DNA of 64,000 bases. Source: Leidyana gryllorum EB-2025a (lineage: Eukaryota; Protista; Apicomplexa). The translations under genes were made by a program, and so were the position numbers. The stretch covers positions 1-64,000 of the forward strand of contig JBLWGC010000033.1 in NCBI GenBank assembly GCA_048772705.1, read 5' to 3'. The stretch's first letter is position 1; every line of letters begins with the position of its first letter. Below are positions 30,090-32,999 of this stretch, piece after piece. The notes under the pieces are model-generated. The model made no database searches, was not told the origin of the DNA, and saw nothing but the letters and a program-made list of their open reading frames with translations.

Positions 30090-30166
30090 GCGCGTCTGTA
30101 CACACACACGTGTGGGCGCGTCTGTACACACACACGTGTGGGCGCGTCTGTACACACACACGTGTG
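30090..30166. repeat. 26-bp tandem repeat x3 (GCGCGTCTGTACACACACACGTGTGG)
   Basis: Directly visible. Each unit contains the palindrome CACACGTGTG. Confidence 0.95.
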
Positions 30167-30258
30167 TGCAGTCCATTCATTTGGCATATGCCGTTCATTG
30201 AGTACAGTTTCCTAACGTTCACGAGTGTGGAGGCCATCAAATCCGATGGTCACTATGT

Positions 30259-30294: not shown

Positions 30295-31189
30295 GCGACC
30301 CATGCGCCCGACGAGGTCGTCTCACGGAGGAAACGGGAGTGGGAACAGTGATGCTTACACCACACATCCGAACAATTGGCAGATCAACTGTTACAATATT
30401 TGGCCATTTCAGATCTTGTGAAAGTTGGCACGGCACGCTCTCGAGAACGAGGCAGATCTTGCGAACGGCACCGATCCAGGAGATCTAGGCAATACCTCGT
30501 GCATGGCGACTTAAGTCACTGTCAGTTACGAGATGTCTCCGAGGGTCTGCACGGAGGGCACGGCTGCTCTGTGGACAATGGCATTGGAACATTCTTCGGT
30601 CATTTAGACCCAACAAGAGGGGGTGACGACATCCGCAGTGAGTGACAAATGCTTTGTCCCTGATTCCAACGACTGTTCACTCACTGGACCCGTTTGCTGG
30701 ACCGCGCCCTCAATACACCCAGTGTTACATCCCTGTTATGTCGCAATCTGAGGTGGTAAGTGTGATTACAATTCCCGTTGGCCAAGAGTGACAATTGGCC
30801 CGACTCGGCAATTTTGTAAATCGTGCGGATGATCGCTCCAACGGTTCAGTGGACGCTGATTGTACGGCAAGCCACGCTACGCTGACCGAGTTGGCTCATA
30901 ATTCATCGGTCTGTTTAGTTGATCAGTGCACATTACATTAGATAGTAATGAGACACCTTCTGTCCCGCTACCTTTTCCAGGCACGGGAAGCTTAGACGCC
31001 ACCCAAATGTACCTCATACTCATAATTAGCCCCAGACTCGAAGGTTCATTGATATGACAACCGCGTACCACACAGACTGTCCACCTCTTTTTTCATCGTC
31101 GCCCGAGTCAACCGTCCCTCAACATGAAGCTGTCGCATCTTGCGGATCGACCGATCTCACTCAATCTGCTAAAATTAGTCTCGAATGTC

Positions 31190-31350
31190 GGCGTCGAGTC
31201 GAGCCCCGTCCGCCCTCTCAGAAAGTCTCAGGTGGGAGAACCACAATATGTGTGACCCTCCCGGGGGACTTACATTCACCAGAGTGCAGTGGTTGCTCCT
31301 CCCCCTGCGCATCGCTTCTTGAGCCAGACACTGCAACCCGCAGGTAAGTT
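31190..31350 (-). ncRNA. U1: U1 spliceosomal snRNA
   Basis: 5' AACUUACCUG; helix H CGGGU/ACCUG; SL I loop GCUCAAGAAG (70K site); SL II GGGGGA..ACCA-CUGCACUC-UGGU..UCCCCC (U1A site); SL III GGAGGGUCACA/UGUGGUUCUCC; Sm-like GACUUUCUGAG; GC-rich SL IV. Length about 160 nt. Confidence 0.92.
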
Positions 31351-31717
31351 GAGTTTTCTTCCAAGTTTTGTTGAAGATATCAGTCCCGTCTCGTCTCCCC
31401 CTCGACCGACGCCCACCCGCATAAAAGTCAACGAGTTGAGAATTGATGTTTTGAACTCTTCGTTCCGGATGCTGATCCTACTAAGCCTATCGCAGGGTCT
31501 GTTTTTGATCCATCTAGTATTGAGCGCATTTCAGAATCATTAGGAGTGTTGTTCATGTTTTTAGTTCAGTCCACGTAATAATAAAAAGAAATGTAAGCAC
31601 ACGTGTGTGTCTATTCTGTGTCTCCGCTCGATTGATCTAGGAATAATAACCATGTAAAAATATTGCTAATTTGCCTAACTGAGGCATGACTATTGGAATA
31701 AGGGGGTAGCTAGCCGC

Positions 31718-31998
31718 AAAAACAAAGTCAGATCTATTAGGCGCGGTCCGGGCTTGACTGACCAAATTGATGAAAGAAGAAGTTCCAACTGGTTCTCCCC
31801 CACGCTGTCCGAAGTGTGTGGCTGACCCGCTCTGTTCCCAGCCTGGTGTGACCACACGGGTGTCTCTCGACTGTGGACACCTTCCGGTGCGCACCCTCCA
31901 GAGTCTCCAGCCCACCCTGAGGGACCTGTTGATCTGCTTCAGTGTGTTAGTATCGCCTCCCAACCGGGTCACAGTGGGAAGTTATCCCACCAGGCGAC
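31718..31998 (-). ncRNA. Signal recognition particle RNA (7SL)
   Basis: Alu domain UCGCCU..GUGGGA/UCCCAC-UGUGA-CCC..GGG-AGGCGA; helix 5 pairings AGAUC/GAUCU, GGUCC/GGACC and GGGCU/AGCCC; helix 6 GCACC-GGAA-GGUGU; helix 8 CCAGGCUG-GGAA-CAGAGCGGG. Ends in a T5 Pol III terminator. Length about 280 nt. Confidence 0.88.
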
Positions 31999-32047
31999 GA
32001 TTAGTCCAACACTGATCAGCGGTGGGCCGACATCACTTCAGATCATT

Positions 32048-32077
32048 GGTTGGGTCGACCAAGTCGATTACCCATCC
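32048..32077. promoter_or_regulatory. Putative back-to-back snRNA upstream sequence elements (USE/PSE) for SRP and U5
   Basis: Dyad GGTTGGG-TCGAC-caa-GTCGA-tta-CCCATCC. Each CCCAWCC half lies about 50-60 nt upstream of its inferred start. Confidence 0.5.
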
Positions 32078-32130
32078 GTTACATCCAGTACACACGCCGT
32101 CTCCGGCGGCTGGCGGGTCTCAGCTCCAAA

Positions 32131-32237
32131 ATTGGTGTGGAGAGTGCCTCAACGCTTATCACCCTCTCGCCTTTTACTAGATGGTGCAGTGAGGCGCTCG
32201 CTTTAACGCTTCAACTTTCTTGAGGACCTCTGGTCTG
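32131..32237 (+). ncRNA. U5: U5 spliceosomal snRNA
   Basis: Invariant loop 1 CGCCUUUUACU (32168-32178) closed by CACC-C-UCU/AGA-U-GGUG. Lower stems GAGUGCCUCA/UGAGGCGCUC and GGUGU/ACGCU. Sm-like AACUUUCUUG (32213-32222), then 3' hairpin GGACC/GGUCU. Confidence 0.92.
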
Positions 32238-32999
32238 ACGTTGGATTCATTCGTGTGGGCGGAGCTATGTGCGAAGACGAGCACCATTTTGGAATGTTGA
32301 CTCGTACGTAAACTTGTTCATGAGGCTGATTGGTTATGATTGTGGATCTACGATGATTTGAGTGCTTGTCGAGATGGAGCCAGTGTGAGGGACGGAGCCC
32401 TCACCTTCCAGAGGCCCAAGGGTTGGGCAAAATAAATTTCCTCCGGCAGCGCTGTGAGGAATTGGAGTGACTCGGAGGGTTTGGAGATCGCCTGACGCAA
32501 TGCTGAGTTATTATGCAATCCCTGCATTCGGTCCCGCGGTTGTGTTAGCAAAAGGGTAGACTGGTGACGTTAAGTTGTATTGAGGTGCCATGACTTGCGG
32601 GAGAGCATTATGCAACCCATCATTCCGGTTATTTGGCGAGTACGACTTGTGAAGTCTGTGGGAACATAATCGGCGGAAGGATCTACGTGATCTGAATGAG
32701 GTCATTGGATACGTTCTGTCCGGCACTGCAACGATCGGAGTACGGGAAGCTCTAACCCTATCTCTGCGAATGTCGACATAGCGCCAGACGCCGATCCTTC
32801 CCGTTCCACTCCCACCCATTCACCGCACTTGAGACACATTGGCAGAAAATGATGCCGCCTCAATTTTCCCCTCCAACTCTTCGTATCTCGAGCCCGAGAA
32901 GATAATTTCGTCACTCAGTCGATGAATACGTTGACGGCAATGCCGGACTCTGTGGCGAGTGCCTTGATGTCTGGTCGACACGATATATCGCTTTCGACG

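Follow-up and report, generated by a model that had tools for sequence, protein, structure and literature searches.

Sm sites with cytosine in place of the second adenine in U1 and U5 snRNA genes of a eugregarine apicomplexan

The window (the whole stretch of 64,000 nucleotides that was analysed) belongs to the genome of a eugregarine apicomplexan, assembled as 237 contigs that total 15.5 Mb. It carries a U1 and a U5 snRNA gene in divergent orientation with an SRP (7SL) RNA gene placed between them (Table 1). The U1 gene was matched over its full length by the Rfam model, at a score which lies below the Rfam gathering score of 69.5 and which was retained by E-value reporting. It is made up of the 5' segment ACUUACCUG, a four-helix fold, the Sm site and a 3' hairpin. 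Its 5' end reads CAACUUACCUG, in which the ACUUACCUG pairing with the 5' splice site is present, and the columns that make this pairing are invariant across all U1 copies of the assembly. The SRP-clan match likewise falls below its gathering score. The U5 gene exceeds its gathering score of 40 and consists of the invariant loop I CGCCUUUUACUA, which was found in all 14 U5 copies of the assembly, followed by the Sm site and a 3' hairpin.

Table 1. Features of the small-RNA locus in the window, and the related loci elsewhere in the assembly
Feature	Position	Strand	Remarks
U1 snRNA gene	31188..31351	-	RF00003, full-length match, 47.4 bits, E 9e-10
U1 Sm site GACUUUCUGAG	31217..31227	-	Column for column with model AAUUUgUGg
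Upstream element GGAGACGAGACGGGAC	31382..31397	-	-46 to -31 of U1
SRP (7SL) RNA gene	31756..32006	-	SRP-clan match, 39.3 bits, E 1.4e-6
U5 snRNA gene	32134..32236	+	RF00020, full-length match, 48 bits
U5 Sm site AACUUUCUUGAG	32213..32224	+	Column for column with model AAUUUUUGg
Module loci on other contigs			C85 (L012), C152 (L014), C186 (L013), C82 (twice; L009 and L005), C12 (L001), C35 (L010), C159 (L011)

The divergent arrangement of U1, SRP RNA and U5 is a repeated module, and the window is one copy of it. A U1-U5 pair was located at eight or more loci, at least, with an SRP-clan match in between at seven of these, the window and six other modules. The genes of the module are conserved and the flanks are unalignable. 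The stretch directly 3' of the window U5 (32237-32386) was 73% identical in the duplicate on contig C85 and 26-37% identical in the other modules, a conservation unlike that of the RNA genes.

Both Sm motifs were unpaired and stood ahead of the 3' hairpin in the consensus folds of the paralogs, and both fell on the Sm columns of the Rfam models with the sequences and positions given in the original prediction. The assignment of heptad positions to Sm proteins was taken from PMC4756616. In this register the heptad A1-C2-U3-U4-U5-C6-U7 runs from 31226 down to 31220 in U1, followed by G8 and A9, and from 32214 to 32220 in U5, followed by U8 and G9; written in the register of the crystal structures, the sites are A-C-U-U-U-C-U-G-A and A-C-U-U-U-C-U-U-G, respectively. 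A commonly used consensus is PuAUUUNUGPu (10.1101/857334). The purine of position 1 is present (A in both window RNAs and in 39 of 39 tabulated U1 copies), and positions 3-7 read UUU-C-U in both RNAs, as the consensus has them. Positions 8 and 9 are G and A in U1, again the consensus, and U followed by G in U5, which amounts to one extra U. The A of position 2, which occupies the SmE pocket, is absent from both RNAs and is replaced by C. As judged from the aligned sequences, the sole true departure from consensus is this C for the second A, with the extra U before the G as an additional feature of U5. Two cytosines had been put forward as non-canonical. The one at position 2 stands as such; the internal one sits at the N, where any base is allowed, and so does not deviate.

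The string ACTTTCT(N)GAG occurs twice in the window against 0.5 expected, and two occurrences were reached in 9 of 100 shuffles, so that the count alone is weak. The case for a non-random motif is made instead by its homologous position in two RNAs and its recurrence across the genome.

Searches of the assembly with the snRNA models returned 42 U1, 14 U5, 11 U2, 5 U4 and 8 U6 matches. All 42 U1 matches scored below the Rfam threshold of 69.5 (top score 68.9 bits) and would therefore be missed by routine annotation. Cytosine at position 2 (C2) was present in 33 of the 42 U1 copies, in the form A-C-UUU-C-U-G. Contig C216 has 28 U1 units that were found by their 5' motif, 26 of which form an array with a 342-bp repeat while 2 lie on the opposite strand; the C2 site was seen in 27 of the 28. 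The other nine U1 copies have A at position 2 in four cases (e.g. AAUUUAUG, AAUUUCUG) and U in five (AUUUUAUG, AUUUUCUG). No U1 subfamily departs from A1, UUU, U7 or G8, while C, A or U is found at position 2 and C or A at position 6; all of them have one and the same sequence for recognition of the 5' splice site. Of the 14 U5 copies, 8 have C at position 2 and 2 have G, the others having A or an ambiguous assignment; a fully canonical heptad is present in at least three (GAUUUUUGG, AAUUUGU and AAUUUCU).

The U4 heptad is AAUUUCU in all five copies, so that C6 occurs there together with a canonical A2. In most U2 copies the site is UAUUU(C/G/A/U)U, where position 2 is A and position 1 is U. 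A short core, UUU-N-U with N mostly C, is common to U1, U5, U4 and U2. The genome-wide comparison of Sm sites which the original prediction had called for thus gave a divided answer: C2 recurs in U1 and U5, and is found in none of the 11 U2 and none of the 5 U4 matches. C at position 2 is a trait of U1 and U5, not of all Sm-class RNAs, and structurally intact U1 and U5 paralogs also carry A, U or G there. The suggestion of a general, lineage-specific Sm code finds no support in view of these paralogs, U4 and U2.

An altered Sm ring had been offered as a cause of the deviation. A Pfam LSM search of the whole assembly yielded 14 genes, six of which were matched to solved orthologs (SmG, SmB, SmD1, SmD2, SmE and SmF); LSm4 and LSm8 were confirmed against solved structures, and the remaining six were assigned by eye as LSm1, 2, 3, 5, 6 and 7. 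The L3 motifs are DMFMN in SmG, DRHMN in SmB, DISMN in SmD1, DRHCN in SmD2, DEYMN in SmE and DNYMN in SmF, and all six keep the pattern of an acidic residue, then a hydrophilic one, then either an aromatic residue or His or Ser, then Met or Cys, then Asn. The L5 motifs, which together with L3 make up the nucleotide pockets, are RG, KG or RC (Arg-Cys in SmF), matching the solved orthologs, and SmE and SmF keep the Tyr and Asn that read the two adenines. The RNA-contacting residues, which the original prediction had proposed to compare, were accordingly canonical in SmB, D1, D2, E, F and G, with no change seen, and no extra Sm paralog was present among the 14 LSM-domain genes. An altered ring finds no support in this set. 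Unlike the six Sm and eight LSm proteins, SmD3 was not found, either by the Pfam LSM model or by a search that took SmD1 as query; introns may break up its gene, or the assembly may not contain it.

The different Sm sites might mark classes of snRNP, that is, distinct cores or variant spliceosomes formed by way of an altered or alternative Sm subunit or assembly factor. The presence side by side of several intact subfamilies of U1 and of U5 makes a variant snRNP set of this kind possible, and the U1 subfamilies, each of them conserved, have different bases at position 2; U2 has a typical deviation of its own, the U at position 1, and the undetected SmD3 gives room for a divergent subunit. However, the 14 LSM genes fit one each to six Sm proteins and LSm1-8, the contacts are canonical in the six Sm proteins, and a single 5' splice-site recognition sequence serves all U1 subfamilies. 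Near-identical U5 paralogs, moreover, differ at position 2, which looks like drift and not like the mark of a class. The window U5 is 94% identical to its nearest paralog, that on C85, and of the few differences between them two fall just before the UUU (CAAC in the window, CGAG on C85), so that the paralog has G at position 2 where the window has C. The U5 positions just before the UUU look to be under weak constraint, and on this comparison the U5 picture appears looser than that of U1. Separate snRNP classes are for these reasons considered improbable.

The statement that the deviation is not the product of decay was borne out. An RNAalifold consensus of 14 U1 paralogs drawn from all subfamilies gave the canonical four-helix fold with 45 pairs and the Sm columns unpaired, and compensatory changes were seen in 30 of the 45 pairs. 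Among 13 U5 paralogs, 13 of 25 predicted pairs showed compensatory changes and loop I was invariant. Between modules the U1 genes are 82-99% identical and the U5 genes 64-94%, as against 24-41% for the outer flanks in six of seven module comparisons; the flanks of the recent C85 duplicate are 73-79% identical. When the Sm columns were left out of the alignment used for a tree, the C2 site, which is the majority U1 form, fell in two deep U1 clades. Of 20 regions upstream of U1 genes, 18 have the hexamer G[AG]GAC[AGT] at -36 to -46, compared with 7% of random 51-nt windows; the upstream element, represented in the window by GGAGACGAGACGGGAC, is a candidate snRNA promoter element. It is present in all C2-type U1 genes among the 20, and absent from the U1 copy at C104:252782, which has the best Rfam score and the heptad AAUUUAU. 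The folds, the conservation relative to the flanks, the two clades and the upstream element together argue against decay of the U1 genes. In the module U5 genes the reverse complement CGTCTCC was noted at about -35, between the U5 and SRP genes.

The same observations bear on whether the C2-type copies could be silent or weak duplicates, with splicing carried by the minority of copies that have a canonical AAUUU. In favour of such a division are the top Rfam U1 scores, which belong to copies with A or U at position 2 (C104:252782 and C121 among them), and the three or more U5 copies that are canonical through the heptad (GAUUUUUGG, AAUUUGU, AAUUUCU). C2 is nevertheless the commonest state and makes up the tandem array. 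In the C2 copies the fold is preserved through compensatory changes, the genes stay similar where their flanks can no longer be aligned, and the positioned upstream element is present, which the canonical copy at C104:252782 is without. It is unlikely that the C2 copies are silent or weak. That the register is wrong, through a shifted heptad or another protein set on this stretch, is very improbable: just three consecutive U are conserved and the U5 copies permit more than one alignment of the site, but Rfam places the UUU on the model UUU in both RNAs, the site has the canonical position between helix and 3' hairpin, and six of the seven Sm proteins (all except SmD3, which was not found) are present and conserved.

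The second adenine of the Sm site is among the best conserved of spliceosomal RNA-protein contacts. The reading preferred here, to which a probability of roughly 60% is given, is that of an ordinary Sm core with a local relaxation of position 2, where U1 and U5 favour C as the replacement. The C2 site accordingly reads as a tolerated local variant and not as a new binding code. The conserved core of the Sm site in this genome is limited to A1, U3-U4-U5 and U7, with the addition of G8 in U1. Position 2, normally an invariant A in the SmE pocket, would be free to vary and is C in the dominant U1 family and most U5 copies; position 6, in the SmD1 pocket, is mostly C, a base that lies within the usual consensus. 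Most likely, such sites would be bound by a seven-membered Sm ring of the ordinary type.

Structures of the U1 snRNP and of the U4 core after re-refinement (Li et al. [quoted passage not shown] Cytosine would present a ring-nitrogen acceptor and an exocyclic amino donor arranged as the N1 and N6 of adenine, and would probably be the least disruptive replacement, since it offers the same two base contacts. In the human system the second A is described as irreplaceable by G and the pocket as one that prefers purines (PMC4756616), so that binding of C, U or G by a standard ring is not a given. Also counting against the preferred reading, the U1 copies with the most canonical Sm sites are those with the best Rfam scores. 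A wider claim would be that the SmE/SmF pocket of eugregarines has lost the adenine requirement and accepts C, U and G, the U1 and U5 subfamilies forming functionally distinct snRNP populations with the same Sm proteins; this is possible but rather doubtful. No snRNA gene of a related species was retrieved, and the relaxation at position 2 may therefore be limited to this species.

The human Sm core is one point of comparison. There, as here, the site lies between a helix and the 3' hairpin, and the U1 site of this genome keeps A1, U3-U5, U7 and G8; six of the seven ring proteins have orthologs here with canonical contact residues. Both also make use of the free N at position 6, which is G in human U1 and C here. 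The difference lies in the second A, read in the human core by SmE and SmF: most U1 and U5 copies of this genome have C in its place, and some have U or G. A variant Sm core of the trypanosome type resembles the present case in that a parasitic protist has snRNA-specific departures from the Sm consensus, but in that system the departures are accompanied by additional, specialised Sm paralogs, and no extra Sm paralog was found among the 14 LSM genes of this genome. The U7 snRNA with its Lsm10/Lsm11 ring is alike in having a changed Sm site that could in principle select a changed ring. In U7, however, AAUUU is retained and it is the 3' half of the site that differs, and the RNAs of the present case are plain U1 and U5; the assembly gave no recognisable Lsm10- or Lsm11-like gene. 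The human variant snRNAs (PMC8457000) share the large families of diverged U1, U2 and U5 genes. The present case differs in that the non-consensus form is the majority and makes up a tandem array, and is no fringe around a canonical master gene.

A dominant U1 family and most U5 copies with C, in a genome whose Sm proteins look standard, would provide a natural test of how strict the contact to the second adenine is. The effect is a modest one, in that a single position departs and the other snRNAs of the genome are without C2. No paper on gregarine Sm sites was found in a literature of incomplete coverage, and a search for the motif strings returned microRNA papers alone. Amoebophrya, which belongs to a separate lineage, has been reported to be without U1 (PMC7789003). 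Metagenome pattern scans, one for the U5 loop with its stem and one for the U1 5' end with loop II, gave no matches, and a 97-aa open reading frame antisense to U1 had no matches among 1.8 billion representatives.

The placement of the genome was taken from its proteins. SmD1 was most like the proteins of Blabericola migrator (92%), Gregarina sp. (87%) and Protomagalhaensia (86%), with further gregarines and apicomplexans next in order, and GAPDH had the same nearest neighbours. The genome is not that of Gregarina niphandrodes, since the GAPDH of that species is only 74% identical. A dinoflagellate origin was rejected: no dinoflagellate spliced leader was found in the window or the assembly, and the SmD1 and GAPDH matches point to eugregarines. 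Four near-matches to the 3' half of the dinoflagellate spliced leader were discarded as lying within a repeated tRNA spacer. They consist of the 16-mer GCTATTTTGGCTCAAG (loci L061-L064; G000:C27:25776-25791 and three others), which is no SL RNA gene but part of a tRNA-cluster spacer that is identical on four contigs.

Several minor features were recorded. The GAPDH gene of this genome (L004, G000:C104:1110753-1113852) ends about 620 bp upstream of a U5 gene with the canonical GAUUUUUGG. Neither Rfam nor the U5 loop motif revealed an snRNA around GAPDH in Gregarina niphandrodes (21 kb searched) or on a Logan contig (7 kb), and the GAPDH-U5 linkage is absent at both loci. An imperfect repeat of the ACACGTGTGTGTGTAC type at 30097-30171 of the window gave weak chance matches to microRNA families, far below thresholds. 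The usual branch-point recognition sequence GUAGUA was present in none of the 11 U2 matches (L045-L055, e.g. G000:C211:8480-8672), which at that place read UUGUAUUU or UUGUAAUU. Just after the terminal hairpin, GAC(A/G) is found in the window at 31188-31192 (minus strand) and 32236-32240 (plus strand) and in nearly all U1, U4 and U5 copies of the assembly (CGCCGACA, GGUCUGACG, GCCUGACA), and may be a 3'-end signal common to these three RNAs.
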